A stretch of 64,000 nt of DNA from Chara braunii (lineage: Eukaryota > Plantae > Charophyceae): contig BFEA01000015.1 of assembly GCA_003427395.1 (NCBI GenBank), forward strand, positions 5,266,751 to 5,330,750, in the 5' to 3' direction. Shown in pieces: positions 26,075-56,302 of the stretch. The position numbers and the translations under genes are program-made. Each line of letters starts with the position of its first letter. Within the stretch, counting starts at the first letter, position 1. Under the pieces are notes generated by a model. The model did not search any database. It worked only from the letters and a program-made list of their open reading frames with translations, and had not been told where the DNA came from.

Positions 26075-28786
26075 CCCGGGATGAATTTGGCTGATGGATA
26101 AGAACTCACCATGTCGTGTGTTTCAGAGAGGGAGGACAAAGGAAGATAGAGAAAGCACATGTGCGTTTGTGCGTGTGTGCGTGCAGGCGGGTGTGCGCAT
26201 GGGTGCTAGCATCCGTGCGTCTGCATGTGTTTGTGTATGTGTGTGTGTGTGTGTGAAGTCGAAGTCGAGCGTGGTAGTACAGAGTGAAGTAGTAAAGTCG
26301 AAGTCAAGCGTAGAGTAGTGTAGGGGTCGATCTTTCCCACGCCGTGGGATTTGCCCGTGCCGCCACCAAAAACGTGCGTGCCGCCACCTAAAAACAGTAC
26401 ACGCACCGCCACCAAAAAGTAGTTATGCACTCCGTAGGATTTTTCCATGACGCTGCCGAAAGGGGCAGCTTTCGGGAACCAAGCCCGTGCACAGAAACGG
26501 CCTGCTCCAACGGGCAAACCACTTCCCAGCAAAAGACCTCGATTGTTCCTGATTAATCTTGGGCCCGAGGTACCGGGCCAACAGTCTGGATTGACGCGTG
26601 ATCTTACGACCACACGCCAATCCAGCCCGTCAATCCGGTAGGACCCAACGGCCGGGATTTCAGATTTACTACATGTTTCAGACGATCCTAGCCGTAGGCC
26701 AGAAGGACCAACGAGGGCCCAGATCAGAGATTGGTTCCCTTAGCAATTTCAATAGTGTAGAGATACTGGACTTCGCCGGCCCCTGAACTAGTAACGAGTG
26801 ATGTTAACGGGTGTCTTTCTGGTCCACCCTTTTTGGTCCATCGGGGCAAGGGCCTACAAGGCATCACCAGCCTTTTTGGTCTAGTAAGATGAGTCTTTCT
26901 GCAGCAACATGTTAGTCGATGTGTTTTGATGTGTACCTGGGCTAGGCACTGGTGGTTCAGGGCCTCATTCAACCACTTGCCATTAAACATTTTCATGAAG
27001 ACCAGTGGTGATGGCAAAAAGATGTTTACAGCAAACTTCATGCCCTTTTGCAAAGCACCAGCCCATTGCTTGTCCGATTTCTGGCTGAACTTGTTTGGTC
27101 TTGCGCGACCATTTGAAATTTCCTGTGTAGGCGCGAAGCTGGATATACGCTGGGAACTCCGCCGAGTATCCGACCAAATGACAAATGTGTCGGTGCGGAC
27201 AATCAGCAGGGAAGTCATGTGTTGATACATGCGCTGCGCCCCTCAACGACTACACGCCAGACATCCCTGCTTGGGATGATGATATAGTCTGAACTTCGTG
27301 GCGCACGAAGGCTACAGGCATTGAAACCAAGGCGACCTGTGAGCTTGCTCGATTGATTTTGAGACACTAGGTACAGGTGTTCTAGTGCCTCATCCCGCTA
27401 TTGGCCATTTGACATTCTTCATGGCAAGTGGTGGTGAAGGCAAAGAAGCTTTTCACCCAACTGCTCCGAACAGGTACTCACTTGCCCTACATGAAGCTAA
27501 GCTGGTCCTGATGGAATCGAGCATCTGCACCTCCCCACCGAAGTTGTTTCACGGTGAACCAGATACTCACTCGCCCTCCTTGTAGCTAACTTTGTGTCGT
27601 GGCCCCATCCTCAACCCTTCGATTTTAGAGAATTGCAAGGAGCAAGCCTCTGGAACTCCCCACCAAAGTCATTTGACAGAGACATCAGAACGATATCTCT
27701 CCTCAAGCCCACGGATTGGGCAAGACAAAAACTGTGGTGGCGTTTCAGCATCCGACATTTCACAATAATCTGACACATTTACTGAGTGTCATCTTTCTTG
27801 GAGTTCTTTCTTCGTTCTTTTTTTTTTAAGGGTCGTCGCCTTGATCGTTCTTTTCTTTTCAAGGGTGACAGCCTTGAGATATCCTCATTGAACTGACCGG
27901 CCCCAGGTAATTCTGAATTATTTTATTCTGGTCACCTTTGTTGCATCTGGATTCGGACTTGGGTCTGTATTTCAACAGTTGATGGGTGTACCAATTGAGC
28001 TAAGCCCATTGGTTACTGACTTTCATCTTTGGCGAGATGGTAACGAGAAACCACTCTCAAGATCTCCCTCCACAAGACCACGGTGACATGTTGGGGAAGA
28101 TGAAACCCATGGCACAGCCTCAAACCTCCCATATTTCACAATGTTCTGACACATTTCCCAACATTCTTCTTTGACGAGTCGGTGCAACAAAGGTCTACAC
28201 TCACTTTTTCTCACCTTGTTTCAGGGTCCGTGTTGGGGATGCTAAACATCAACACTCACCCTCCCAATCTAACCATTACCAGCTCCTCTGGTCAGTCGAA
28301 CAGCAATAGACGACTGCCAAATACATTCACTAACACACATGGACACGGGCAAGGCAAAGGGATTGCGCCTCCACAAGAAGTCGTTGTCATATGTTACATT
28401 TATATCATATAAAAGAACACACATTGCAATGAAAAAAATGACCAGGTCAACCTGTTGCTGCAAACTACCTGCACAGAACCAGGGTCAAACCCACATGATG
28501 CCTGCCTTCTACCCCATCATGGTCCCCTCGCGCATACCTCCCTTTATGATTGTCCTCTCAACACCAAACAAAGAGGTAATATACATGATTTTGACTCAGC
28601 TCTGCATCCTAAAGCCGCAAAGGTTTCCTGCAGAGCGCGCAAAACCCCCATGCACACTTCACAGCATTCACTCCCGCACTTGAGGATGCTGTGTTACTCG
28701 TGAAGCTGGTTTCCCATCCAATACTGACAATGCACAAGCAGACAAACACTCGTCACCAAAGTAGTGGCAGTGAAATATTGAAACAA

Positions 28787-31700
28787 TTAGTCACCTTTCA
28801 AAGAGGGGGCAGGCTGCTGAAATGCTGGCATCGGATTAACAAAGCACAGGAGCGGGTTACTAGAGTAGCCCTGCACCTGGACCTGAGCTTGAGACTTCAG
28901 CGACGGAGGCTGCTGCTGCAGAAACATTCGTTGACTGTGTTGTTGGACTTCCAAGTCGAGAGGTCGCCGTCCATCTTGTGCACTTGTAACTGACAGAAAA
29001 GGTAGAGAAGTGCAAGAGGAGGAGACGAGAGGGAAGGTTGGCACTTCCTCCATCCCTGAAGAAGCGAAAGGATGCCCAATCTGCATGCCAGTCAGCACTC
29101 TTTCAGGGGGGGGAGGAGCCACTGGTAAATCAGGACTTAGGNNNGGNGGGGGGGGGGGNGGTTGGAAGGGTGGCGTCCCGGATGGTGGGAGGGGAGGTGG
29201 TGATGACAGTTGCATTGGGATTGGAGACGGGGGAGTGGGAGGTGGAGAGGGTGGTGGAGGTGGTTGAAACGGAGGGGGTGAAGACGGCAATGGAGGGGGG
29301 GATGGTGGCAATGGTGGTGGCGAGGTAGGGAGTGGAGCCAACCCCGAGCACTGCATTGGGGTCTCAGGGGCCATGTTCTCGGCTATCACCATTGGCACAC
29401 ATTCATCACTGTATGTTCCACCACTGCCTGATTGACTTTGCTCCATCTCACAGCTTGCGTTCTCCATGGCTTGTAACCCTGACGATTCCCTGACGTCCAT
29501 CACTTGTGCTCCCACATAGTTATTAGATACCAGTTGTGCCTGCCCACTGCTGGCACGTGAAGCACTGCCATTGAACCCACTCACATCAGGCCCTGCAGAT
29601 GTTCCACAACCATCAAATCTACCCTCTGGCATATGAACAAGTGCTGCCTCGGGCACCGGGGGCATGCTGGACACTCCATCGATAACACCCTCCAATGCAA
29701 GATATGTCGAGCACGCAGGGGGTGCCAGGTCCTGTAAGTCACCCACCGTTTGGTAACTATTTGGTAAGGGACTAGTTTCATATAGACTGGTCGCATTGCA
29801 AGAATCCTCCATATCCCCAAACCTCTCCAACAACTGGACGGCAGCATCACTACCCTCACACTCTGTAGCAGATATCGACAATGGCTGGGCCACTTCATCT
29901 GCTGCATGCATAGGAGTGGAGAACTCGCTCAGCTGCTGCTGCGGATGCATCACTGAGTCAGGAGTTGCATCAGCTTTGTAATACAAACCCGAAGCTTGTG
30001 ACTTCTCCATCTCAACCACACCACTATTCACATTTGGTCTCCCCGATTCCTCCACATTTGCTGTACACTGTATATCATCATGATTATTTGCAATGGGCGC
30101 ACCCAGTTGCATACAATTCTCCGCATTGACAAAATTACTGTCCATTTCGTTAGCAGATGATGTGCCTTGAACCTTACAGCATTGTGGAGTGGCAGCAGCA
30201 GCAGAAGCCGAAACAGTGCTGGCAACCACAAAACCATCCTCTTTTGTGTTTGGCTGATTCAAGTCATTATGCGCCTCAGATCCAAACGTCTGAGGACCGC
30301 CTACAACTCCTGTGTAAAGGATGTTAAATGAACTCTCTGGCGGCAACCCACACCCGGATTGCTGCCTCCCAGTTAGCTGGACAGATGGAGGGCCATCCAA
30401 TGGCGACACTGTCGTCTGAGAGGACACATCCACGTCTCCAGCCACTATCGACAAGGAACACGGTGAAATCTGGGGCTGCGATGGTGTGGATCCGGCCACT
30501 CCATCAGATGGCACCTGCCCCATTTGTGGAGACATATTGCTCAGATTTAACGGTTCGCTTTGGTGCTCCTGCTTCATCACCGGCTGCTGCGGAGGAGCTG
30601 CAACAGCACTCATACCCACAGAGGTACCTGCAGAGGAGCCAACTGTTGCAAAGCCATCACCGCTCATTCCAGAGAACTGCAGTTGAGGAGACTCCCCTCC
30701 AGCGCTATGCGCACTCCCCGTATCCACTGCACACCTCTTCAGAGGTGGTCCCTCAACTCCCATATCCTTGCATGTGTAATCAGAAGCATCCGCTCGCGCC
30801 CACGGCAGTTCTACCGAGTATCCATTGCCAAACACAGGTAGACTGAGAGTTGGCATGCCCACACCGGGTATACTTACAGACGGCAGGCTCAAAGGCGGTA
30901 GACTTACAGGCGCCCGACTCACAGAAATGTTGGCCGCCTGGCATAAATCCGCATTCGCTGTAGCCTCTGCCAAAAATGTAACGACAGGAGATAATTTCAT
31001 CACCCCATCGCCCACAGGGTCGGACTGTACAGGTGATGGTATGGAGGCACACAGATCATCATTGTTTCCTCCTGGGATATGTACATTATCAGCAGCAAAA
31101 TGCGCCACTGTGCCTACTGGAACTTGCATCTGGCAATCCTGGGCCGTCACATCTGAGACAGTGCGCACTTGCCGACCTTGTGCTCTGTGTTGCCGATTCT
31201 GCTCGAGTACAGGCAGCTGACTGTCTACCATGTAACCACTCACCAACCGCAAAGACAGCGGAGGAGGAGGCGGTGGGGGGGGCGGGGGTGGTGGAGGTGG
31301 AGGTGGCACTTTCCGACCAGCAGAACCCTGCTCCTGAACACGATCCGTAGGTGAGGACCCGTGTGATTGGCTGGGCTTCACTCGCAAAAGCCCAGTGTAT
31401 AGGGTAGTTTCAGCTGTCTTCTGGCTCGGGCTCACACCATGGCAAGCAATCAATTCCTCTCCCCGCCCCTCTCCAGTCTGCTCGGAGATCCTGCCGATGG
31501 GCGATCCACATGTGTGCAGCATACCATCACCACTGCCATTACTTCCTCGGGCCCTCCAGCCCCCCGACTCCATGGACCGTGCCAAGCCTAATATTGATAC
31601 ATCTTGGAAGCTCGAGTCATCACCTGTTGGTCCTGCACAGGAGTCTGGACGGGTCTCAGATGCTTGGCAAGCCCCTGCAGATCCATCCTCGGTGCGTTTC

Positions 31701-32722
31701 GAACGCTCCTGTTCCTCAACTAACCATGCACTTGCATAATTGCAAGGAGGGCGGGGAGCACATCCTAGCTGTCTAGAGTTTGCTATTGCGGTGGGGACAG
31801 AGGGCACTACCCCTGCTTCTGCATCAGAAGCCATTTGTGCACTTCTTACTGCAACCTCTAGCAATCTCACAAAATCATCTTCATCTTTCCCAGTCTGCCT
31901 CAATCTGGCAAAAGTACTATCTTCTTTTGCTTCTTGCTGTTGTCGCTTTGCGAATACCTTGAATGTGTTACTCTGCGAGCTCGCTACAGCACAAGCATTC
32001 CTGCTGGCTGCCATGTGCGCACGCACTGCGTTGCCATCTTGTGGCAAAGGATCAACAGCCGCCACATTCCTCGCAGCACTCGGGCAATCGTGTTGAGGCA
32101 GACTCTCCTCCGCCTGTCGCTGCCGCTGCCCCCGCATTGTCATCAACCCAATCCTCTGCTGCCCCATCACCTCGCGTCCTTGCTGGGGAACAGAATTAAC
32201 ATTGACCAGTTCTTCCCGATGAACTTTGGTGCTGTTATGATATCCTCCAGGGTTACCTCGGGCAAGGTTTACCCTCGACTTCTCACCAGCAGCGGAGTCT
32301 TGCTCCAACTTCGGCCTGCAGCTCACCGCCACAGCATCAGTCCTTCCCTCAGACTTCCGGCCCACTTCCCTTCCCACCAAACCACCACTTCCCCATGGTT
32401 TGTTGAACCTACACGACCCTCCTGCACCCACACCACCTCTTCCCCCCACCTTCAAATCCATCACCACTGGAGAAAGTGCTTCCTCTACCATAATTTGTTG
32501 GGGTGCGCCATTCTTCCTTGGTGTCCCGTGAGACTCTTTAGCCGGAGTATCCAGCCTCATGACTCTCTCCAGGCTTTTTGCCATCACCGAATCTGGTGAG
32601 AGGTCTCTGCCAAGGTTCAGCACACTCGCTCGTGAAGCAGCAGGGTCCCCCATAGTTCCAGAAAAGAGACGTGATGCATGTATGAAATTGCTGGCACAAC
32701 AACAGAAAACCATTACCACCAT
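28787..32722 (-). CDS. Large low-complexity S/P/Q/A-rich, probably disordered protein segment with polyproline tracts; likely one giant exon of a host gene (likely ATG at 32653)
   Basis: 1311 codons without a stop in DNA whose other ORFs are short; no domain recognised; possible GT donor near 28795. Confidence 0.75.
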   Translation of the reverse strand: MVVMVFCCCASNFIHASRLFSGTMGDPAASRASVLNLGRDLSPDSVMAKSLERVMRLDTPAKESHGTPRKNGAPQQIMVEEALSPVVMDLKVGGRGGVGAGGSCRFNKPWGSGGLVGREVGRKSEGRTDAVAVSCRPKLEQDSAAGEKSRVNLARGNPGGYHNSTKVHREELVNVNSVPQQGREVMGQQRIGLMTMRGQRQRQAEESLPQHDCPSAARNVAAVDPLPQDGNAVRAHMAASRNACAVASSQSNTFKVFAKRQQQEAKEDSTFARLRQTGKDEDDFVRLLEVAVRSAQMASDAEAGVVPSVPTAIANSRQLGCAPRPPCNYASAWLVEEQERSKRTEDGSAGACQASETRPDSCAGPTGDDSSFQDVSILGLARSMESGGWRARGSNGSGDGMLHTCGSPIGRISEQTGEGRGEELIACHGVSPSQKTAETTLYTGLLRVKPSQSHGSSPTDRVQEQGSAGRKVPPPPPPPPPPPPPPPPLSLRLVSGYMVDSQLPVLEQNRQHRAQGRQVRTVSDVTAQDCQMQVPVGTVAHFAADNVHIPGGNNDDLCASIPSPVQSDPVGDGVMKLSPVVTFLAEATANADLCQAANISVSRAPVSLPPLSLPSVSIPGVGMPTLSLPVFGNGYSVELPWARADASDYTCKDMGVEGPPLKRCAVDTGSAHSAGGESPQLQFSGMSGDGFATVGSSAGTSVGMSAVAAPPQQPVMKQEHQSEPLNLSNMSPQMGQVPSDGVAGSTPSQPQISPCSLSIVAGDVDVSSQTTVSPLDGPPSVQLTGRQQSGCGLPPESSFNILYTGVVGGPQTFGSEAHNDLNQPNTKEDGFVVASTVSASAAAATPQCCKVQGTSSANEMDSNFVNAENCMQLGAPIANNHDDIQCTANVEESGRPNVNSGVVEMEKSQASGLYYKADATPDSVMHPQQQLSEFSTPMHAADEVAQPLSISATECEGSDAAVQLLERFGDMEDSCNATSLYETSPLPNSYQTVGDLQDLAPPACSTYLALEGVIDGVSSMPPVPEAALVHMPEGRFDGCGTSAGPDVSGFNGSASRASSGQAQLVSNNYVGAQVMDVRESSGLQAMENASCEMEQSQSGSGGTYSDECVPMVIAENMAPETPMQCSGLAPLPTSPPPLPPSPPPLPSSPPPFQPPPPPSPPPTPPSPIPMQLSSPPPLPPSGTPPFQXPPPXXXLSPDLPVAPPPPERVLTGMQIGHPFASSGMEEVPTFPLVSSSCTSLPFLSVTSAQDGRRPLDLEVQQHSQRMFLQQQPPSLKSQAQVQVQGYSSNPLLCFVNPMPAFQQPAPSLKGD

Positions 32723-35209
32723 GCAGTGGTGTTAGCATTCATCTTAACATCCACCAACGTGCAGTGCTGCGAGCATGCACAATGTCACCAACATTGCAGT
32801 GGTGTGGGCATTCATCACAGCATGGCAATTTTGACACAGGAAACAGAAGATGAACAAGTGCATCTTCCCACAGATTATGGAACGATTCATCTGTTTTTCG
32901 GCACCTTATGTGGGCAAATGCACTTCTCTTTTGTTCTGGAATAGTAACAAATGTATTCTGCCCCCTTCTGTGGCCAGATGTACTTGTTTTCTTTTTCCAT
33001 TTTGTGCCCGAGGACAACAGTATGCGCAACAATCACAACACAATAGTCTTCAACGTCAGCCAGACAACAATCACAACGCAATAGTCTTCAACGTCAGCCA
33101 GACGAGCGATGCAAATTGTCACAGACACTTCACTAATATCATATAGGACGAAATGAATAAGGAAAAAAGGTAGACAAGACGAAACAATGGCATCCTCTTC
33201 TCATTCACTTCCTTCTCTCTTCCTTGTGTTCTCTTCCTTCATCATACATCATTCAGTCATTAACCATCACCTTTCCAATTTCGCCACGGCTACCTTCCAA
33301 GAATAGTTGGGTACCCATGGTCATAAGGCAAAGAGTCACAGACTCTTGACATGTGACAATCAGGCCAGGCATACAGAAACTAACAGTTCCACATAATGGC
33401 GACAACATCATGCAATTTGGAAGTGGTCAGTAAAACCACCGCACATAATGTCACTACAGCAATAACCAACCACGCAATTCAACCTGGAATACAACCTCCT
33501 TCCCTAACCGAGTGCTAAATCAGAGTGTTCTTTCGTGTTTTATTTTACATCAATCAGGCTAATTCAACTTAATTGCAGATTTGTCATCCATACAGTCTTC
33601 CCGCTGTTCTCTTTGTTTTCCTCTCTTTTTCAGCTTCTTTTTGTTCAAACCTTCTGCACCAATGAATATGATTTTGTCACATTCTTTGTATTTACCACAT
33701 GCTTCAAAAGAACACCCGACTGCCTTTCTCGGGCTATACATGCGCAGCATTGTTTTCATATTTGAAAAGACGTTCTCTTGGATTGGACACAGTCCAGCGG
33801 CGAACTCGTTAATCAAAATGTGGAAGCGGGTAACTATACAGGATGATCAGGACCTCAGGCTAACCATTGAGCTCAACAGCTTTCAAACTGCGGACTCCGT
33901 GAGCAATTAGACCACGATCGGAGACTTGGCACCATTCTATTTACGAGGATTCGAAGTAGCGCAACTCGTTATGGAGTCGTTATGGAATCTGAGGTGAGCA
34001 ATTGAAAAAGTCGTGGCCAGAGGTACCAACCTGCCATACTCGTCAAAATCGTAACTGGCATATGATTCCAAGTCGGGAAAAACGTCGTGAACTGCACGAT
34101 CAGAAGGACGTTGTCTGTATGCCATGCCATTGTTCAGCACCTTGAGCTGGGCCAAATATTTCTCCATTACCTTCACCGGAAGAACTCTGCGCTCCATCCA
34201 GCAAGTCAGCACCTGTCCACATCATGATGGCAACAACAACACCAAAAAAGGGGTCAGGGTTTGCAGATCCATTGTTCGAGGCAAGATATGGTCCGAAGAG
34301 ACATTCACGGGCACTGTTGGCTGGACGAAAATCTGTCATTTTAGGTTCCTTTTCCTCTGTTTGTGAAACCAGTCATACTGTCTTCTTTCAACCAGGCGTT
34401 CACCGATTCATCATTACAGCATGTGTGTCTAGCTTTTCTAAGAGGGACGAACTGTTTTCGATGAAAACGTTTCACAATGTCTTGAATGGAGAGTCATGAA
34501 GGTCCCACACTCAGCATTGCACAAGAACGGCTAGCGCAGACCTCCTCTGCCCTGCCGTGCGATAGCTCCCCACCAGACAGCACCAACCACATGTCAAGAG
34601 ACTGACATCGAAGGGAAAAAGAGAGAGGATACAAATGAAGCTCGCACTCACTAGTCTGCTACAGATCTTTGGGGTGGAAGACGTGCCAATTGGCAACAAG
34701 ATCAAGATGAAGGAACATAAGAGACGGGAATAGTCAAACAAACAGACGACTCACCTGGTAACAGAGCTGCCGATTGCTCCTCCCTCTGGCCCCATCCGGG
34801 GCCAACGCATTCAACACACGGGGGAGTACATTTTGTAGTTCCCGTGGATACACATCCTTCGATTTCCCTGGACCACAGGATTCCACCAAAAGAATTGGCC
34901 ACAACCACAATCAGTCAAATGCAGAAACACGAAACGGCTGAAAGGAATCATCCTTAGAGAAAACAAAAAGAAAACGGAATTACCCTGAGGTCTAGCAGGT
35001 ACAAGGTGTCAATCCAAAAATCGCAATGCCTCCCCTGAGGTCTAGCAGGTATGAGGACATCAACTCTAACACCATCAACGCCAAACATCAAACTTATGGT
35101 CCGGACATATATATATTGTCACACTGTGAAACATAATCCTCAAACAGAGCTGCCAGGTAAACCGTAGCCAGAGCGGGAGAAGAGGACAGCAAACGAGGGG
35201 CTGTGACAA

Positions 35210-35244
35210 ACTGTTTCGTCGGAGTTTCACCGACTCATCAGGAG
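35210..35244 (-). ncRNA. 5'-truncated hammerhead (family A)
   Basis: CTGATGA gtcgg-tgaaact-ccgac GAAA cagt; stem I replaced by a TA tract. Confidence 0.85.
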
Positions 35245-35776
35245 ATATATCGTCTATATATCGTCGTCTATATATTAAAAACCATCGGCAGAGAGGGAGA
35301 AGAGGACAACAAACGAGGAGCTGTATATATATCGTCAATTGTCATATATATAATATCAAACAGAGCTGCCCGGTAAACTGTAGGCAGAGAGGGAGAAGAG
35401 GACAACAAACGTATATATATATCATCACATATATATTGTCACACTGTGAATCGGAGCGCAAGGCGGAAAAGGCAAAACAAGGAAAGGAAAAGAAGGAAAG
35501 CCCCACCTGTTCATCACCTCTTACGTACAAGGCCAGCCACGTGGATGACAGGTTGAGCACTGGCTGCCCCCATCCCCGTGTGTCACAAGGACCCACTTGC
35601 ACGCAACCAAAAGGCAAAGAGGTAAAGAAAAGGAGGAGGAAACCTCCTGACAGGGAAACAAAGCAAATGACACATCCCATAGATAATCCAATTGTCACAA
35701 AGCAAATAACACATCCCACAGATCAACATTTTTTTCTTTTTCCTTATTTTCTTATTTTCTTTTTTTGCTTTTTTTT

Positions 35777-36111
35777 TTAACTGTTCCCACCTCGGCAGAT
35801 AGGACAGCTACGGTGAGGATGATGTGGATGTTCACAAGGATACCCAAGGAGAGTTGCGCCAGCACAGCATTCAGCAGGACGGCTAGCACGAACCATCCCA
35901 TCAAAACAGTCCTGACAGAGGACATGTACACATGTCAAAAGAACAGCAGGACGTTCATCACAGTGCGCCATCATGCAGTTCTGATAGCGTCCTTGGGCAC
36001 AGACCCTTCAGCACAGACAGCGGTAGTCGCAATAGATTGATAATAGTGATGGCATAGATGATGAATGCCACAACCAAGACGCACCGCGTCTCTGCCCCAA
36101 CAGGTGTCACA
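35777..36111 (-). pseudogene. Two tandem RING-like zinc fingers (frameshifted by an internal deletion)
   Basis: CDTC...CGIHHLCHHY... and CMMAHC...C.HVLCQDC...CPIC; the deleted part is retained in the copy at 38431-38738. Confidence 0.75.
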
Positions 36112-36123
36112 CAAGAGTCGGTC

Positions 36124-36681
36124 AATAATCCAGAATAAAGTATGATTCTGCAATGCACCCAAAAACTCGTTTCCGTTGGAAATAGCCTGAATCATCGTCC
36201 CACCATCCCACAGTTCCCACTGGGCGGCTACACGAACGAGTGCCATATAATGCCCGGGTCTGTGTAAAATACAGGCAGAAATATGAGGATGGTCATTGAG
36301 GTCATTGCCTGGCGTCGCATGATGCATAAGAAGGTGGCGACCATGGAAAGCTAACTGTAAGACATTTACAGCAAAGCCTCCTGAGGTAGTATATTTACTA
36401 CCTTCAGGAGGTGGGCTATTATGGTCATACAACAACCGATTTTCAACAGCGTCAAGCTGATAAGCAATCGTAACAAACTGTGACGCAGTATAACATTGAC
36501 GCTGATAAGCCTGTAGGCAGACATTTGTGGCTGTCAAACCACAAGAATTTGGTAGGTCTGCCCGCAGATCCGAATCGGTCACCACCGGAAAGCCAGCTGT
36601 GATCTGGCGGGGTCGGCGCATAAATGACGAACACCGCCGACGTGGCAGAGCAGGTTGTCGGTAAGACAAAGAACCCCTCAA
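36124..36681 (-). pseudogene. Josephin (MJD/ataxin-3-like) cysteine protease domain within the element ORF
   Basis: SCGLTATNVCLQ, IAYQLDAVE, SGGFAVNVLQLAF, GHYMALVRVAAQWELWDG and HTLFWII parallel ataxin-3 motifs; C47/H144/D159 with His-to-Asp spacing of 15. Confidence 0.8.
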
Positions 36682-36971
36682 ATTAGCATCAACACGACGT
36701 CAAGAGGAAGGGGGACTAGGAGGGGAGAATGAACGAGCCTGCCGACGTCCCAATATACATATATACATCGTCAAACAGAGCTGCCCGGTAAACCGTAGGC
36801 AGAGAGGGAGAAGAGGACAACAAACGAGGGGCTGTGACAAACTGTTTCATTGGAGTTTCATATATATCGTCACAAACAGTTTATATATATAGTATATATC
36901 GTCAAATAGAACTGCCCGGTAAACCGTAGGCAGAGAGGGAGAAGAGGACAACAAACGAGGGGCTGTGACAA

Positions 36972-37011
36972 ACTGTTTCGTCGGAGTTTCACCGACTCAT
37001 CAGGAGGCTGA
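36972..37011 (-). ncRNA. 5'-truncated hammerhead (family A)
   Basis: Core, stem II and the 3' strand of stem I present; truncated in loop I at a TA tract. Confidence 0.85.
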
Positions 37012-37584
37012 TATATATATATAGTCACAAGAATATCAGCACACAAATGCAAAAAAAAAGGAAAGAAAAAAAAAAGGGAGAAAAACAGGAAAAAATGAAT
37101 TCAGTTTTTTATCTTCTTCCTTATAACTCCCCCTGTTCAGAACCTCTTGCGTACAAGGCCGCCCACGTGGATGTAGGTTGAGCGGCGGCTGCCCCCAACC
37201 CCGTGTGTCATATCGACCCACTTGCACACAGCCAAAGGGCAAAGAGGCAAAGAAAAGAGGAAGGGAACAGCCACAAGCAATAGCACCAAAAACGGATCCT
37301 AGATGACAAGTCCCACATGCACGCACTGCCCCTCCTTCACATGCCAAACGACAGGACAAGACCACCCAGGACAAAACTCTTGTCAACCAGGATGCAGACA
37401 AGGTTACCAAAACAAATTCTACCATATCCATAGAAAAAAAACGGAACCATACAGTAGGTCCGCAAAACGAAATACCCCATAATTGGGGAAGAACAAAGCA
37501 AAAAAAGGGAGAATTAGGAAAATATTTTCTACCATAACCAAAGAAGAGCCTGCTAGCACAGGCCCGACACAACGTCATAGTATA

Positions 37585-37964
37585 CTAGGCTACCAGAGTG
37601 GCCCGGGGTCACTTGCCCGGCCGGGCAAAATAATAATAATAATAATCATAATATAATAATAATAATAATAATAATTTTTATTGAAAATTATTCAAAATTT
37701 GGTGAAGAATTTCGATGTGACCCTGAGGCAAAAGTTGTTCAGTTTATTTTTTTGCATAACATAGGTTTTTTTTCGGATTTTTTGGATTTTTTGGATTTTT
37801 TTTCGGATTTCTTGGATTTCTTGGATTTTTTGGATTTTTTGGATTTTTTGGATTTTTTGGATTTTTTGGATTTTTTTTTTTTTTTTTGGCTGAGACCTTG
37901 CCCGAATCCCTGGTCCTAGCACGGGCTGGCCACCCGGGACCCGGCGGCCCGGCTGGTAGCCTAG
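37585..37964. mobile_element. hAT-type MITE inserted into the cluster
   Basis: TIR CTAGGCTACCAG/CTGGTAGCCTAG; 8-bp TSD ATAGTATA/ACAGTATA; internal (TTTTTGGAT)n and (AAT)n. Confidence 0.8.
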
Positions 37965-38430
37965 ACAGTATATATCGTCACATGAATATAAGAGAGCAAA
38001 GGCGAAAGAAACAGAAAAAGAAAAATTAAAAAAAATAAATCGTTTTCTTATCTTGCATACCGCCCACGTGGATGTAGGCTGAGCGGCGGCCGCCCCCACC
38101 CCGTGTGTCATATCGACCCACTTGCACACAGCCAAAGGGCAAAGATATATATTGTCACATTGTGAATCAGAGCGCACAAAAGGGGAAAGAAAAAAGGGGA
38201 AGGGGAAGAGGTAAGGAAAGCTCCACCTGTTCATAACATCTTACGCACAAGGCCAGCCACGTGGATGACAGGTTGAGCGCTGGCTGCCCCCATCCCCGTG
38301 TGTCACAAGGACCCACTTGCACACAGCCAAAAGGCAAAGAGGTAAAGAAAGGGAGGAGGAAACCCTTTTTTCTTTTTTTCTCTTTTTTCTTTTTTTCTTT
38401 TTTTCTCTTTTTCTTTTCTTCTTTTTTTCT

Positions 38431-38738
38431 TTACCTGCCCCCACCTCGGCAGATAGGACAGCTACGGTGAGGATGATGTGGATGTTCANAAGGATGCCCA
38501 AGGAGAGCNGCNCCAGCACAGCATTCTGCAGGACGGNTAGCACGAACCATCCCATCAAAACAGTCCTGACAGAGGACGTGTTGTCCACATGTCAAAAACA
38601 CGGCAGGGCGTTCATCACAGTGCGGCATCATACAGTTCTGATAGCGTCCTTGGGCACAATAGGGACAACGTGTATCTGGGTGATAGGGATGTGTACAATG
38701 AGGAAATGTTGGACACCCTTCAGGACAGACGGCGACAG
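38431..38738 (-). pseudogene. Second copy of the RING-RING region
   Basis: VAVCPEGCPTFPHCTHPYHPDTRCPYCAQGRYQNCMMPHCDERPAVFLTCGQHVLCQDC...CPICR in one frame. Confidence 0.8.
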
Positions 38739-38840
38739 TATATATATATTGTCACACTGTGAATATATCATCAAACAGAGCTGCCCGGTAAACTGTAGGC
38801 AGAGAGGGAGAAGAGGACAACAAACGAGCGGCTGTGACAA

Positions 38841-38892
38841 ACTGTTTCGTCGGAGTTTCACCGACTCATCAGGAGGCTGAACCCTCAACAGT
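38841..38892 (-). ncRNA. Full-length type III hammerhead with GUU triplet (family A)
   Basis: actGTT gagg-gttcag-cctc CTGATGA gtcgg-tgaaact-ccgac GAAA cagt. Confidence 0.85.
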
Positions 38893-39894
38893 CTGCAGAC
38901 TCATCAGGAGGCTGAACCCTCAACAGTCTGCAGAATCCCCGAACCTGATGATTACACTGTTAAGTGATAATCCACCTTAACCCCGGCTGTGGTTACGCAT
39001 CAACAACTGCCCGACAACTGATAACCTGAGGTGGGCATCAACCACTGCCCTCAAGGTACCTGTGATGAAAATCACCACAGACTGTCGGTTCACACACCAT
39101 CACAAGCCACTCTACAGACTGTCGGTTCACAACCCATCACATTCCAGCAAAACACCCACGGTAGTTTGTCACAGCCCCTAGTTTGTTGTCCTCTCTCTCT
39201 CTCTCTCTCCCTCGCACGTGCGCGCGCGCCAAACCGAGCTGCCCGGTAAACCGTAGGCAGAGAGGGAGAAGACAACAACAAACGAGGGGCTGTATATTTG
39301 TCACACAGTGAATGTCACACTGTGAATCAGAGCACAAAGGCGGAAAAAGACGAAACAAAAAAAGGAAAGAACGAAGGATAGCTCCGCATGTTCAACACCT
39401 CTTACGTACAAGGCCAGCCACGTGGATGACAGGTTGAGTGCTGCCCCCATCCCCGTGTGTCACAAGGACCCACTTGCACGCAGCCAAAAGGCAAAGAGGT
39501 AAAGAAAAGGAGGAAACCAAACTTCACAGAGGCAAGAGAAAGAGAAAGGGATTCCGTCAAAGAAAAGACGAGGGAAGAGGAAGGCCTATCAATCAAACAA
39601 AACAAATGACACATCCCACAGATAAACCAATTGCCACTGTCACAGCAAAGTTCAACCTATTCTTTCTTTTCTTTTCTTTTTTCTTGTTTTCTTATTACTT
39701 GTTTTCTTTTTTCTTGTTTTCTTTGTTCTTTTCTTCCGCATTTTTTTTTTCTTTTTTTCTTTTCGTTTTATCAATTTTTTCTTTCTTCTTTCTTCAACTC
39801 CGTATCTGTTACTAGTGTTGAAAGCCTTATCTGTCCTACAAAAATTAGTGTTGCTCCTGACCTGCTTCTTGATTCTATTGGCCAATCAGGAAGA

Positions 39895-40108
39895 GGAGCC
39901 CCCACCCCGGCAGATAGGACAGGCACGCTGAGGATGACGTGGATGTTCACAAGGCTACCCAAGGAGAATTGCACCAGCACAGCATTCAGCAGGACGGCTA
40001 GCACGGACCATCCCATCAAAACAGTCCTAACAAAGGACATGCTGTCCACATGTCAAAAAAACAGCAAGATGTTCATCACAGTGCGGCATCATCCAGTCCT
40101 GATAGCGT
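39895..40108 (-). pseudogene. Third, more decayed copy of the second RING
   Basis: Homologous to 38431-38650. Confidence 0.8.
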
Positions 40109-40110
40109 GC

Positions 40111-40450
40111 CAAGACGGATCTCTCCGATTCAGTGTATTTGATAAGACTGTTGCATGGGATTTTCATGTGATACGATATCCTAATGCAACGTCGAACATT
40201 TCATCTCATCAGCCTGCAGGTGTGTTCACCGGCCAGCTTACGCGGTCTGGGCATATTTGTGACAATTGGCATGATTTCAGAACTGCGGCAGTCATGCTTG
40301 TCCACCCGTCGTTTGCTTTGGCCATGCTCCTTTGACATTGGCCCGAGGATGGACTTGTTACACTAGTGCTCGCCTGCGTCGACACCTTATACATGTGACT
40401 CGACGTACACAATGGCTTCGCCGTATGCCTCGCTGGTCCGTGCGCATCAT
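40111..40450 (+). pseudogene. C-terminal (thumb) region of a Penelope-like reverse transcriptase, Naiad/Chlamys type
   Basis: DGSLRFSVFDKTVAWDFHVIRYPNATSNISSHQPAGVFTGQLTRSGHICDNWHDF, then after a frameshift GHAPLTLARGWTCY; matches the PLE pattern YDK..F.F....P...SN.......GV...QL.R...C....DF....GY. Confidence 0.8.
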
Positions 40451-40869
40451 CCTCTTCCACCTTCTCCTCCCATTCCTTCCCTTCTCCTTCTCCCTCTCCC
40501 CCTCCTCCTCCCCCTTCCTCTTTTCCATCTTCTCATCCTCCCCCCCCTCCCCCTTCTTGTCCATTTCCCCCTCCTCTCCACTTCCCCCTTCTCCTCCTCC
40601 TCCCCGTCCTTCCCCTTCCCTTCTCCCTCCCCCTCCCTCTCCTTCTTCTTCTACTTCCCCTTCTTCTTCCCCTTCCGTCTACTTTCTTCTTTATCCTTTT
40701 CTTCCTCTTCTTCTTCTACTCCCCCTTCTTCTTTCCCTTCTGTCTACTTCTTCTTCTTCTTTATCCTTTTCCTCTTCTTCTTCTTCTTCTTCTTCTTCTT
40801 CTTCTTCTTCTTGCCTCCTCTAGTCTGTCTTCTTCTTCCCCTTATTCCAACTCATTTTCGTTTTTCCCT

Positions 40870-41248
40870 CGCCAACACCCTGCACGCCGGCTGAGATCGG
40901 CCCCTCCCTTATCTTCGTTGTCTGAATACGTCGTCAGGTTCGTTCATTCTCTCCTCCTCCCAGTTCCCCTTCCTCTCGACGTCGTGTTGATGCTAATCTG
41001 CCGGATTCTTCGTCTTAACGACAACCTGCTCTGCCACGTCGACCGTGTTCGTCTGCAACCGCGCCGGATCAGACCTGGCTTTCCAGAGGTGACCGATTCC
41101 GATCTGCGGACAGATCTACCAAATACTTGTGGCTTGACAGCCACAAATGTCTGCCTACCTCAATGGCTTATCAGCGTCAATGTTACACTGTACCCCATTT
41201 TGTTACAAATGCTTATCAGCTTGACGCTGTTGAAAATCAGTTGTTGGT
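40870..41248 (+). pseudogene. Linker and Josephin N-terminus, downstream of the RT fragment on the same strand
   Basis: Homologous to the reverse complement of ~36430-36750 (DSDLRTDLPNTCGLTATNVCL). Confidence 0.85.
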
Positions 41249-41395
41249 AGCAATCGTAACATAATGGGATGCAGTGTAACATTGACGCTGATAAGCCATT
41301 GAGGTAGGCAGACATTTGTGGCTGTCAAGCCACAAGTATTTGGTAGATCTGCCCGCAGATCCGAATCGGTCACCACTGGAAAGCCAGGTCTGATC
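41067..41395. repeat. ~146-bp inverted repeat of Josephin coding sequence
   Basis: 41067-41213 is the near reverse complement of 41249-41395. Confidence 0.95.
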
Positions 41396-41762
41396 TATAT
41401 ACATATATCGTCAAACATTGTCAAACAGAGAAAATATATATATCGTCACAAACAGAACTGCCCGGTAAACCGTAGGCAGAGAGAGAGAAGAGGACAACAA
41501 ACGAGGGGCTATCGTCAATATAGATATATCGTCATATGTTTGTCGTCATATATTAATATAATCAAACTGAGCTGCCAGGTACACCGTAGGCAGAGAGGGA
41601 GAAGAGGACAACAAACGAGGGGCTGTGACAAACTGTTTCGTCGGAGTTTCATCGACTCATATATATTATATATCGTCATATATATACATAGTCAAACAGA
41701 GCGGCCCAGTAAAACCGTAGGCAGAGAGGGAGAAGAGGACAACAAACGAGGGGCTGTGACAA

Positions 41763-41814
41763 ACTGTTTCGTCGGAGTTTCACCGACTCGTCAGGAGGCT
41801 GAACCCTCGACAGT
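41763..41814 (-). ncRNA. Intact type III hammerhead ribozyme (family A)
   Basis: actGTC^ gagg-gttcag-cctc CTGACGA gtcgg-tgaaact-ccgac GAAA cagt; predicted cut between 41809 and 41808. Confidence 0.93.
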
Positions 41815-42214
41815 CTGCAGAATCCCCTAACTGACTACACTGTAAGTGATAACCCAAACCGCGGCTTTGGTTAAGCATCAACGACTGCCCAACAACTGAT
41901 ACCCTGAGGAGGGCCACCAACCACTGCCCTCAAGGTACCTGTGACGAAAATCAAAGCAGACTATCACTCACACACACCAGATGGAAAACTCTACAGACTG
42001 TCGGCTCACACCCCATCACGAGCAAGCAAAACACTCACGAAACAAAGAAAGGTCTGTCACAGCCAAAAAATACACTCCAGACAACGTCGCTGGCATTAAA
42101 ACACAGCAAGGCCGCGAAGTGACGGCCCTGACCACTGCCGCTCGACCTGATCGGAGAAAACCGTAGCAGGGTGCTAGCAAAGTCGTGGTATATATCGTCA
42201 AACAGAGCTGATAA

Positions 42215-42259
42215 ACTGTTTCGTCGGAGTTCCACCGACTCATCAGGAGGCTGAACCCT
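42215..42259 (-). ncRNA. Hammerhead copy starting at the self-cleavage site
   Basis: Begins AGGGTTCAGCCTCCTGATGA directly after a TA tract, 1 nt short of the predicted 3' cleavage product. Confidence 0.85.
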
Positions 42260-42800
42260 ATATATTGTCACATTGTGAATCCTATATATCATCACACCGT
42301 GTATCGGAGCGGAAAGGCGAGAAATATATATATTATAAATTATATATATCGTCACATGAATATCAGAGCGCAAAGGCGAAAAAAAACAGAAGAAAACAAA
42401 ACAAAAAAAAAAATCGTTTTTTTTTCTTAATATATATATCGTCACAAATAGAACTGCCCGGTAAAACGTAGGCAGAGACAGAGAAGAGGACAACAAACGA
42501 GGGGCTGTGACAAACTGTTTCACAAGAGTATCAGAGTGCAAATGCGAACAAAAAGAACAAAAAGGAAAAAAGAAAGAAAAACAAGAAAAAATGAATTCAA
42601 TTTTTAATCTTCTTCCTTATAACTCCCCCTGTTCAGAACCTCTTGCTGCCTATACCGTCGAATACAACTGTTCAGAACCTCTTGCTGCCTATACCGTCGA
42701 ATACATACATGTGTGTGTGTGTCCATAGAAAGACAGAGAACTCGACTATGACAGCGCAGGCAAAGAGGGAAACGAGGACAACAAACAAGGGGCCGCCGCT

Positions 42801-42862
42801 GACTGTTTCCTCGGAGTTTCACCGACTGACTCATTAGGAGCGGCTGGGCCCTCCTCTACAGT
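42801..42862 (-). ncRNA. Divergent, probably inactive hammerhead
   Basis: gactGTA...ctc CTAATGA gtca gtcggtgaaactccgag GAAA cagtc; core mutated. Confidence 0.6.
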
Positions 42863-43329
42863 CCCCTAACCGATGATGGTACTGTTCAGTGACATCAACG
42901 ATTGCCGGACAACTGATACCCCTCCGCAGAGGTGGGGACCACAAACCACTGCGCACTGCCCTTAAGGGGACCTGTGACGAAAATTAAAGCAGACTATCAC
43001 TCGCCCACACCAGGCGGAAGACTCTGCTCCGCAGAATGGATATGCTTATACACACATACATGCCTATATATCGTCAAACAGAACTGCCCAGTAAACCGGC
43101 CAGAGAGGGAGAAGAGGACAACAAAGGAGGGGCTATGACAAACTGCTTCGTCGGAGTTTCAGCATAATGCAATTCTATTTATCATTAACATACTCTATCT
43201 CGTAATGCGTTCTTACTTAACGATATTTGAAATACTATTTCTCACTTCACGCACCAACCAGTCGCCGAGTCGGACAGCACATTAGGATGGTCAGAAATGC
43301 ATCTAGCCCAAAAAAAAAAAAAAAAAGGA

Positions 43330-45143: not shown

Positions 45144-48100
45144 GAAGGAGAAGGGAAACGGGAAAACAGAGAACGCAGCAAGCACACGGCAAACAACGGC
45201 TGTGGCAAAAGACAGAGCACACGGGAGAAAGGGGGGGCAGGAAAGACTGGTTTCCGAGAGAGAGACGACCGGTAGGGAGCAAAGAGAGAGAGACGACCGG
45301 TAGGGAGCAAAGAGGAGATGACGGGTAGACCGAAGAAGAGAGACGTCAGGAACGTAAACAGTGAAGAACATTAGCATGGCCATTGCTGCTTCCTTTCTGC
45401 AGTTGTTCTGCTGGCTTCTGCCCACGGCAAGACGCTGTGTGCTGAAAGAGAGGAGTCGTTTCGAACGTCACTAAAAACTGGACACACACAAGATTAGCAC
45501 GGCCCCTGCGAAAAGGATTGACACGCACAAATACCGGAAACCGGTCCAAATGCTATAAACAGAAACAAAACAAAGGGGAAAATTTGGAACGACATAGAAA
45601 AGCAGAGGGCCCCCCTGCTTCCCCGCCCAGTTACTTTTTGGTACACACAGCGATTAGACAACTCGTATCTACCTCCATCCAGATGGACGTCTGTTAACAA
45701 ATTCCATATCAATTGAAATAATGGACTCCCCAGTGTTCCTACTATATCGCTCCAAGACATTATCCGTTCTTTGCGCGGAAAAACACTAGGCACACTCTCA
45801 CACTAGGACCTTTTCTATTCAGCTCTAGACATGATTACGGTCACATGCATCCACGTCTGAAACGTAATTGGAGTCGGATTGATTTTGGAGAGTGCCGGTG
45901 TGAGTCTGCCCTCAGACTAGTGAGTCTGCCCTCAGACTACCGTCTTCCCCCGAACACAAGGCACTATTATTTTGGCTGTATCTGGCCGGACATATAGCTT
46001 GTATACATTCATTTTTAGGGTGCGTTATGTTCGGGGGAAGACGGTAGTTATATGCGGGACAACAATTAGCTAGAACTTCTCTCCATACGAAGGACATTGG
46101 TAGAAGCTTGGCCGATTGAAGGAAGTAGGATTTGAGCCTCCAACGTTGACGACAACCGAACCAGAATCCACCCTACCACCCAGCCAAAGCTCCGGACTAC
46201 TGACAACGCATTCATTCCTCCATTGACCCCTCCCAATCACCCGTCGCTGACCCCTCCCAATTACCCGTCGCCAAATCAATAGACACCGACTTCCCGACCA
46301 TCCCACTGGGGCGGGAGGATTTGAGCTTACGACATCATCATCCCTTGAAGCAGGCAGTCGGTCACGACTTAAGAAAACTTCTGCCGACTAACGAGAAAGC
46401 CTACAAGAGTGAAATCGATATTAGCATTCTTGCTCTTCTTTTCAATTCGTTTTTTTGTACGTTTCCTCATGGAAGTGCAGAAGCACACAACGGCAGAAAA
46501 GTAAACATTGAACTACGCCCCGTTCAGTATATAGAGAAAAAAATCGGCACGTAAATCGAAATACGGTCCAAGCGAAAAACAAAATTGAAAACGGATTGCT
46601 TGCTCCATGGTGTCCAAACAATTGTCATCACAAATTCCGACAGGTTCACCAATCGTCACAGATTGACTGGGGTTTACGGCACGATTGATTGGAATCCATA
46701 ATTTGCCCCTGCTTTACCAAGCATGTTGCCTGATTGACTGAAATGTGCCTGGGTTCGTTCGTGCGACCGAATTGGACCTACCTATCATAATCCCTGAAAT
46801 CCATTCCCATCACCTCTAAATTACTAGTGGATTGACCTCTTAATTACTAGTGGATTGACCTCTTAATTACTAGTAGATTGACTAATCAAATGCTTCAAAC
46901 TTCCATACACTTGATTGCTGAGCCCAATCAATCAATGCTTGTCCCCATCGTACTATAACAGAGACTCAAACGACGCCTTCGGCGCCTTCGTTTGGCAACG
47001 AACCAATCAACCAATCAATTAGTCAATCCCCAAACAATGGTGGATTAACTAATCGCAATGCTTGAAACGTTCACGAACTCGATGTCGCGTCCAATCAACC
47101 AACGCTTATGCCTATTAACTTTTCGATCAATCAACGACTCGATCATCCACTGGATCACTGAATCCCCAACTACAGAGAGATCAAGCCCGCTTAACGAATC
47201 AAATATAAATCCCTTCGCTCCAATATTCCTATTTGTCGACCCGCACCCGTCGAATGAGGTCTACATAATCATCAAGGAAAATATCAGCAGCACTGACTTG
47301 CTCAACAAGTCAATTGTGACAACGACAGGACCTCTAGAGTAATAACCGGATCACCTGGCAAATGACTACAGAGACTGACCCACGACGAGAAGACAACGGT
47401 AAATACACAAACGAAAAAAAAAAAAAAAAAAAACACGTAACCAATCCAGATTACTGGCATAATAGATATAGATCTACTCCACCTCCCCTCCACTCCCCTT
47501 TTCTGCGCACCCCAACGCAACTCGTAATCATGATCTTGGTTGGGCCGCGCGCCCCCCCCCCCCCCCCCCCCCCCCCCCCTTTCCTCCCCCCCCCCCCCCC
47601 CCCCCCCCCCCCCACGAGGTCCAACGATGACGATAAAAGATTGTTCTGTCTTTTCGATGACGGTAAAAAGGCTGTTCAATCATTCAATGTTGATTCCTTA
47701 GTCTATATAAGAAACGTGGTCAATCGCGCGCCTCTCAGATCTCACCCCTCCCTTTCCTCGGTATATAATCATCTATAACCAAAACAGGCATCCTTATCTC
47801 TCGACGAAACATGTATACATTTTGTCCTCTTAGGTTCCTTTGTTCCCCCCTCGCCACCAACTGTCTGGTAGACTTCACTTCTCCCCTCTTCCTTCGTTTA
47901 CCTCTCCGGAGGCCAACTATGTGCCTCTGGTTTCTCACCCATTGCCACCAGCTTTTCGTCATTAACCAGGGCGGCACCACGCACCCTCTTTTTTTTCCAC
48001 TTCGTCACGTCTTTCTTGGAGATTCCCTGGCCCATCCCTGCTAACTGTCCCTTCCCCATCCCTGCTAGGAGTCCGCCACTCCCATGCCCCGGTCACCACC

Positions 48101-56218: not shown

Positions 56219-56302
56219 CATATATATATATATATCGTCACAAATAGAACTGTCCGGTAAACCGTAGGCAGAGAGAGAAAAGAGGACATATATATATATA
56301 TA
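56219..56302 (-). mobile_element. Solo 3'-terminal fragment of the family A element within (TA)n
   Basis: TATATCGTCACAAATAGAACTGTCCGGTAAACCGTAGGCAGAGAGAGAAAAGAGGACA flanked on both sides by (TA)n. Confidence 0.9.

Follow-up and report, generated by a model that had tools for sequence, protein, structure and literature searches.

Can a single open reading frame (ORF) of a retroelement join a reverse transcriptase (RT) to a ubiquitin-type protease and RING-type fingers, and does the same element also carry hammerhead ribozymes? The question is raised by a stretch of 64,000 nucleotides (nt) of the charophyte Chara braunii (GenBank assembly GCA_003427395.1, contig BFEA01000015.1, positions 5,266,751 to 5,330,750 of the forward strand), which we call the window and in whose own numbering its features are given. 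A first reading of the letters without database searches (the sequence-only reading) had proposed that 35105-43165 holds a new Penelope-like element (PLE) that bears hammerheads and encodes RT, Josephin and two RINGs. The explanation that best accounts for the whole locus, and which we consider very probable, is that a (TA)n landing site received two families: J, a Chlamys-type PLE with a Josephin domain, and H, a separate hammerhead mini-element.

Self-comparison of 35105-43165 shows it to be assembled from repeats, almost all of which lie on the minus strand. At least 15 retroelement units can be told apart, 5'-truncated, on the same strand and each with a TGACRA(TA)n end, and the two families, J and the short non-coding hammerhead units of H, make up the array. 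The sequence TGACRATATATA occurs 16 times in the window against 0.02 expected, always on the minus strand (16/16), with 15 of the 16 within 35110-43076. Frequent 5' truncation, partial tandems, inverted copies and microsatellite targets, all habits of PLEs, are seen in the array. In the mechanism we propose, target-primed reverse transcription (TPRT) would have used the (TA)n microsatellite again and again as a landing site, which gathered at least 15 5'-truncated minus-strand units from two Penelope-like families of C. braunii. The J family would encode a single ORF with an N-terminal GIY-YIG endonuclease, RT, a Pro/Ser linker, a Josephin cysteine protease and tandem RING-like fingers, and H would be a small element without coding capacity, at least 500 nt long, with a type III hammerhead ~75 nt from its TGACGA(UA)n end.

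Fusion of reverse transcriptase and Josephin

Remains of an RT thumb lie on the plus strand at 40114-40299 and 40320-40442, with 56-63% identity to the thumbs of PLE proteins. As a whole, 40114-40442 matches the thumbs of some 35 PLE-type proteins; that of P0010 (1282 amino acids (aa)) is 56% identical to the window pieces (E ~1e-21), and the thumb of the Chara gene model P0029 is 82% identical, while a Pfam search of the same pieces gave zero matches. A Pro/Ser-rich stretch (~40450-40900, plus strand) separates the thumb from a pre-Josephin region and Josephin start at 40928-41246, which shares 85% DNA identity with 36748-36430, the start of J copy 1. The order of thumb, linker and Josephin start on one strand, as first read from the letters, is present at 40114-41246 (plus strand) in degenerate form: the copy is dead, with at least three frameshifts and at least three stops. 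It counts against the two-family explanation that the thumb-linker junction is present only once in the window and that, for precisely this family, neither a full-length J copy nor an intact one was recovered.

The fusion is nevertheless genuine, one PLE ORF joining RT, a Josephin-type protease and RING-like fingers, because it is found in a single frame elsewhere in Chara, in intact ORFs of other origin and in a coherent group of the RT tree. On another Chara scaffold (locus L002), an RT with PVDKT, a thumb, a PPPPRPSP-rich linker, Josephin, four Cys/His units and a stop follow one another in a single frame, with three in-frame stops over ~1,480 codons. Two proteins from JGI metagenomes, P0010 and P0011 (JGI 3300081878), are uninterrupted 1282-aa ORFs with GIY-YIG, CxC, GxKY, DK(T), RT with thumb and a C-terminal Josephin, the linker between thumb and Josephin being ~100 aa, and P0014, from a Logan assembly (SRR32619059), has a similar architecture. 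In P0010 the motifs can be read directly as DCHCRK (CxC), GSKY and PVDKT, the last of which is also in L002; the window copies stop short of these parts. The GIY-YIG N-terminal to the RT is a weak match in P0010 (residues 58-88) and P0011 (residues 72-105), and in P0040 it passes the cut-off (26.7 bits) and is accompanied by RVT_1; the window copies are 5'-truncated. In the RT tree, all Josephin-bearing RTs, including that of Chara, group together at a branch with an SH-aLRT of 94, nested in a clade where several proteins carry an N-terminal GIY-YIG. This was a quick maximum-likelihood tree that contains no named reference PLE, and is supportive rather than final.

The sequence-only reading had expected RT and Josephin to co-occur in other copies, as they do in L002, P0010, P0011 and P0014, and its proposal of one ORF that joins RT, Josephin and RING-like fingers is borne out by L002, by the P0010 and P0011 ORFs and by the tree. 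The full-length copy that it predicted was recovered in part: GIY-YIG, RT and Josephin are together in P0010 and P0011, and RT through to the fingers in L002, but a search at E<=0.1 found no terminal hammerhead.

In the thumb-Josephin linker of L002 (11390-11450 of that locus, plus strand) there is a C2H2-like zinc-finger motif (C-P-Q-C ... H), which the window family does not have.

Relation to known elements

The sequence-only reading knew of no such architecture in a PLE, yet it had been published. Craig, Yushenova, Rodriguez & Arkhipova described three PLE types in C. braunii, the first of which, Chlamys-1_cBra, has an RT ORF of ~1800 aa with a C-terminal Josephin-like motif and an unnamed conserved Cys/His motif (Craig et al., 2021; PMC8557442). 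The core architecture of RT, Josephin and Cys/His motif was thus already known. Judged by host, the best protein matches being C. braunii gene models, and by predicted architecture, the J family is a Chlamys-type PLE of the kind published as Chlamys-1_cBra. The two have in common the host, a GIY-YIG upstream of the RT, the CxC and DK motifs, and a C-terminal Josephin-like domain followed by the Cys/His motif; both are without a canonical hammerhead and both show 5' truncation and tandem and inverted arrays. They differ in that the window holds dead, truncated copies of a two-finger family (the sister L002 having four fingers), and in that the Cys/His motif left unnamed in the paper is here predicted to have a RING-like fold. 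The target of J in the window is (TA)n, whereas Chlamys elements in the paper have mostly (CA)n or (C)n targets (PMC8557442). It counts against the identification that it rests on the published description and not on a comparison of consensus sequences.

A Josephin-like cysteine protease in a retroelement ORF is also found in the Dualen/RandI non-long terminal repeat (non-LTR) retrotransposons (Kojima & Fujiwara, 2005, cited in PMC8557442), and the comparison with Dualen was already drawn by Craig et al. (PMC8557442). The RT of J is PLE-type with GIY-YIG, whereas that of Dualen is of the long interspersed nuclear element (LINE) type with apurinic/apyrimidinic (AP) and restriction enzyme-like (REL) endonucleases. 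In agreement with the sequence-only reading, PLE-type thumb matches and GIY-YIG-bearing relatives place the J RT among PLEs and not with the Dualen LINEs. Identity as a Dualen/RandI LINE was rejected because the relatives of J carry an N-terminal GIY-YIG and PLE motifs.

The Josephin domain and the Cys/His fingers

J copy 1, which had been read as continuing at 36750-35436 through Josephin, two fingers, a conserved 3' untranslated region (3'UTR) motif and the 3' end, does contain these parts, with finger 1 partly deleted. The 236-aa ORF of this copy (36681-35971, minus strand) scores 33.1 bits (E 6e-8) with the Pfam Josephin profile (PF02099), whose cut-off is 26. Josephin domains from 11 elements, when aligned, share a conserved Cys in CGL, a His in GH(F/Y) and, after the His, a W-x-L-W-D/N motif, and the window ORF retains all three conserved residues (Cys, His, Asp). 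While phmmer of the single ORF against the PDB gave zero matches, a profile aligns with the Josephin domain of ataxin-3 (PDB 3o65/2dos/1yzb; E 3e-5) and brings the catalytic Cys and His of the two into register; the alignment ends before W-x-L-W-D/N, the motif of the putative third catalytic residue (Asn/Asp). A single-sequence AlphaFold2 (AF2) model of the Josephin-finger region of the Chara locus L001 was unusable (predicted local distance difference test (pLDDT) 38.9). The J domain is therefore like the ataxin-3/JOSD deubiquitinases in its match to PF02099 above cut-off and in its aligned catalytic Cys and His, and unlike them in being very divergent, in having no ubiquitin-interacting motifs and in lying inside a retroelement polyprotein.

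Downstream of Josephin, finger 1 of copy 1 (36123-35974, minus strand) has lost its second half in a ~58-nt deletion, which explains the frameshift of this copy, and finger 2 (36007-35780, minus strand) runs to a stop at 35777. The 65-aa ORF that follows the Josephin ORF (35974-35777, minus strand) gives sub-threshold RING matches (zf-RING_5, E 7.6e-5). Self-comparison revealed two further copies of finger 2 (38449-38631 and 39895-40092), and an intact junction between fingers 1 and 2 is seen in J copy 2. Nine units from three families yield the consensus C-x3-4-C-x9-C-x2-H-x2-C-x2-[C/H/D]...C-x-H-P-x-H-P-x3-C-P-x-C, which, compared with a RING cross-brace, has an atypical spacing of the first pair, an atypical sixth ligand and extra Cys/His. 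There are two fingers in the window family and four in the sister family L002, and none were found in the metagenomic relatives L003 and L004, so that among the sampled loci fingers occur in Chara only.

An AF2 model from the alignment of nine sequences (pLDDT 69) forms a beta-hairpin followed by a helix. The top 50 Foldseek matches of this model are nearly all RING E3 domains, but at E>=0.8, and when the fold was compared exhaustively with 48,161 chains, 32 reached Z>=2, of which 31 were RING-type domains. A RING assignment is weakened by the Z scores themselves, which do not exceed 3.1, by a Pfam RING match in only one of the nine units (best zf-RING_5, 23.3 bits against a cut-off of 27.9) and by the comparison of the finger profile with the PDB, where the best match, the RING protein Z, has E 0.29. 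From the model, the Cys/His unit looks like a RING-like cross-brace finger with extra ligands.

Josephins are ubiquitin isopeptidases (MEROPS C86). Among PLE-type RT proteins related to the RT of P0010, Pfam finds other C-terminal cysteine isopeptidases where Chara has Josephin. P0031 (from GCA_050300255.1) carries USP/UCH (56.7 bits); P0034 (from ERZ25333217; 2099 aa, in a 17-member cluster) has GIY-YIG, RVT_1 and UCH; and P0028, from a cluster of 92 members, has Ulp1/C48 (28.5 bits). The P0034 ORF is flanked on both sides by RT-bearing ORFs of ~2,250 aa (L005, 3001-9300), and the UCH group forms a separate clade in the RT tree. A further locus among the PLE proteins with USP/UCH or Ulp1 proteases, which come from other assemblies, is L006 (3001-5319). 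No report of USP or Ulp1 in PLEs was found in the literature. This recurrent capture of proteases is a lead rather than a finding of the window.

What the protease does is the point on which a rival retains most weight. According to this alternative, Josephin would be a cis-acting protease that processes the polyprotein, the Cys/His units would bind nucleic acid or chromatin, and neither would write or erase ubiquitin. Retroelements commonly bear processing proteases, the fingers fall under the Pfam RING cut-offs with odd spacing and extra Cys/His, and the metagenomic relatives carry Josephin without fingers. We regard it as unlikely, since the domain belongs to a family of ubiquitin isopeptidases and matches ataxin-3 at the catalytic Cys and His, an unbiased fold search yields almost only RING E3 domains, and inspection of the ORF showed neither a ubiquitin-like domain nor an obvious site of cleavage. 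Where J has its Josephin, at the C-terminus, related PLEs moreover bear USP/UCH or Ulp1. The three protease folds are unrelated and have only the deconjugation of ubiquitin or ubiquitin-like proteins in common, which argues that deconjugation, and not polyprotein processing, was selected. We infer that the Josephin/RING module acts on ubiquitin and is not a self-processing protease; it would protect the ribonucleoprotein of the element or remodel ubiquitinated host or chromatin factors.

The 3' ends of J and H and the place of the hammerheads

The J family closes with ...CA(C/T)(A)RTG-TGACRA(TA)n. In copy 1 the terminus is TGACAA(TA)n at 35430-35441, and all four or five J 3'UTR copies of the window, together with the L001 copy, end in ...TG-TGACAA (or TGACGA) followed by (TA)n. 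Such a terminus, ...TG-TGACRA(UA)n in the RNA, could pair with a (TA)n target. Upstream of it, a 3'UTR motif of ~80 nt (35495-35630, minus strand, in copy 1, with further copies at 38205-38345, 39375-39500, 37120-37260 and 38030-38150) is conserved as DNA across J families whose proteins share 25-45% identity. A four-helix structure of 22 pairs fits this motif: 95.9% of cells are paired, and in 12 cells both sides have changed. A value as high was not reached in any of 500 shuffles, and slid controls were 22-50% paired. Support for covariation is moderate, as the set comprises eight sequences from about three lineages, and the structure was specified by hand, RNAalifold's own consensus having missed the best-covarying helix. 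The Chara motif was not found in the metagenomic relatives L003 and L004. It is plausibly an element recognised by the RT.

At 35110-35135 and 38743-38770 (minus strand), two H units are followed by a few TA and then by the last ~15 nt of a J-type terminus (TTCACAGTG-TGACAA). These remnants are either J copies truncated almost completely from the 5' side or examples of the short 'tail' that has been described at PLE insertions.

The hammerheads themselves were correctly noticed at the outset, and the count of about nine whole or partial ones was fair: two are complete, three retain the core only and several are partial or reduced to the tail. The complete type III hammerheads (Rfam RF00008), at 41761-41816 (47.5 bits) and 38839-38894 (45.8 bits), lie below the gathering score of 48.5 but keep CUGANGA and GAAA, and Rfam finds two weaker partial ones in the array. 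By pattern searches the whole catalytic core is present in five units, the additional three (35213-35241, 36975-37003 and 42218-42246) having lost the 5' helices; the tail is present in about a dozen units, several of which have a partial core or the tail only. The two longest H units, at 38743-39160 and 41667-42188, do not code for protein; one of them begins directly after another TGACGA(TA)n junction. Each of the ten short H units has its start downstream of the cleavage site, at a distance of 2-66 nt, which fits reverse transcription of self-cleaved RNA.

Do these ribozymes belong to J? If the Josephin element had the hammerhead module as its real 3' end or pseudo-LTR, RT, Josephin, RINGs and ribozyme would be united in one element. 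H units do flank every J copy of the window, J and H both close with TGACRA(TA)n, and canonical PLEs carry hammerheads in their pseudo-LTRs (PMC8557442). The junctions, however, make such an element very improbable. Each J terminus gives way to (TA)n, beyond which a fresh unit opens at a different internal point. At four termini the newcomer is either a further 3'UTR fragment of J or an H unit whose start lies 8, 58 or 66 nt inside the ribozyme or past it. The J copy of L001 ends in TGACAA(TA)n and passes into unrelated DNA without a hammerhead, and a search of L001-L006 at E<=0.1 found none. Craig et al. likewise found canonical hammerheads in Chara PLEs only in two subclades other than the Josephin type, namely Chlamys-2_cBra, which combines a 3' hammerhead with a gag-like ORF, and an endonuclease-less type shared with spike mosses, and they suggested that hammerheads may simply parasitise PLEs (PMC8557442). 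The description of J as hammerhead-bearing is therefore not supported: J copies close with their own terminus, H units restart at varying truncation points, and the J relatives L001-L004 are hammerhead-free at the same threshold. The hammerheads are part of a separate, co-targeted mini-element.

The shared 3' end suggests, from the sequences, a common priming mode or a shared RT, and H units would borrow the RT of a J-type or related PLE through it. Two considerations pull the other way, in that the sequence common to both ends is only ~8 nt plus (TA)n, and that the common end may reflect a common target preference rather than a shared RT. The H units resemble Chlamys-2_cBra, other hammerhead PLEs and retrozyme-like elements in having a type III hammerhead near the 3' end, 5' truncation and insertion into a microsatellite. 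Unlike in Chlamys-2_cBra and the hammerhead PLEs, a coding part of H type (a gag-like zf-CCHC ORF or RT) is not present in the window, and unlike the LTR-type retrozymes of plants, H units are linear insertions of TPRT type.

Outside the array, a diverged sister hammerhead at 26019-26073 (minus strand) passes the Rfam gathering score with 49.8 bits. A further hammerhead unit lies at 1458-1486 (minus strand) and an H-type tail with TGACGA(TA)n at 56229-56240 (minus strand).

Layout of the array

From its low-numbered end, and on the minus strand unless stated otherwise, the array begins with three H units in (TA)n at 35107-35411, one with a 5'-truncated hammerhead (core 35213-35241) and two tail-only. 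They are followed by J copy 1 (35430-36750), which is 5'-truncated and runs from the pre-Josephin region through the 3' end. Two H units at 36753-37011 come next, the one at 36893-37011 beginning 8 nt inside the ribozyme and the one at 36753-36872 ~29 nt inside. Two J fragments, c4 (37025-37272) and c5 (37970-38147, ending in TGACGA(TA)n), consist of 3'UTR only. J copy 2 (38146-38738), with four N bases inside, runs from the latter half of finger 1 through finger 2 and the 3'UTR, and adjoins long H unit A (38743-39160) with its complete hammerhead at 38839-38894. An inverted pair of H tails, to which no strand is assigned, occupies 39162-39304, where Rfam gives a weak miRNA-like hairpin.

J copy 3 (39306-40108), with finger 2 and the 3'UTR, is followed by the inverted J fragment D (40111-41246, plus strand), the degenerate copy of RT thumb, Pro/Ser linker, pre-Josephin and Josephin N-terminus, and by J fragment E (41249-41396), an N-terminal part of Josephin that folds back with D in a palindrome at 41067-41395. 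Of the H units at 41437-42270, one is reduced to its tail, one is partial, long unit B (41667-42188) contains the complete hammerhead of 41761-41816, and another has part of a hammerhead (42213-42266). The stretch 42343-42522 contains a terminus of J type (42343-42354) and a tail unit of H (42433-42522), and the outermost H unit, with a partial core, lies at 43065-43161.

Read along the minus strand, the middle of the array presents a sense Josephin fragment (41396-41249), an antisense thumb-linker-Josephin piece (41246-40111) and a sense piece (40108-39306) covering finger 2 through the 3' end. Joined in this way, with ~440 nt absent between them, the inverted 5' arm and the direct 3' arm resemble the product of twin priming. 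The link between RT and Josephin in the window would accordingly derive from one twin-priming-like insertion, with D as its inverted arm and copy 3 as its direct arm. As in L1 twin priming, the inverted 5' arm (thumb to Josephin N-terminus) abuts the direct 3' arm (finger 2 to 3' end) with an internal gap; unlike there, the element is a PLE, the mechanism is putative, and there is an extra fold-back at 41247, which we infer to be a second switch. That thumb and Josephin start at 40111-41246 are instead two different elements juxtaposed by chance is hardly credible: just one window copy spans 40111-40928 and it is full of frameshifts, but the same order of thumb, linker and Josephin recurs in the single frame of L002 and in the intact ORFs P0010, P0011 and P0014, and the published ~1800-aa ORF agrees with a fusion (PMC8557442).

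Other features of the window

Three further features lie outside the array. A group I intron match to Rfam (51 bits against a gathering score of 50) at 27077-27310 (plus strand) adjoins an AT-rich stretch and a gap of 808 N (23297-24104), and may be organelle-derived DNA or chance. At 45455-45555 (plus strand), a U6 snRNA-like sequence with 37.8 bits (gathering score 44) and part of its 5' region absent is probably a pseudogene or retrocopy. An uninterrupted ORF of 1311 aa at 28787-32722 (minus strand), on the strand of the array and ~2.4 kb from it, is rich in Pro, Ser and Gln, of low complexity and with zero Pfam matches; it looks like a large host-gene exon for a disordered protein.

Significance

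The locus mainly confirms and annotates the architecture described in 2021. It adds, modestly, a RING-like reading of the Cys/His motif, a covarying 3'UTR structure, a two-finger member of the family, hammerhead mini-elements with the terminal signature and landing sites of J, and other deubiquitinase or deSUMOylase folds in sister PLEs. A broader interpretation, which we advance tentatively and judge possible rather than probable, is that PLEs with an N-terminal endonuclease have repeatedly captured isopeptidases for ubiquitin or ubiquitin-like proteins, that the Chara lineage added RING-type fingers, and that the abundant hammerhead mini-elements may parasitise the machinery of J by way of the UGACRA(UA)n 3' end common to both. 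Were this so, tandem RING-type fingers beside Josephin would form a possible module for erasing and writing ubiquitin, and countering host control based on ubiquitin or SUMO would be a recurrent need of this clade of retroelements. Taken together, the additions point to a general link between the clade and the ubiquitin system of its hosts.

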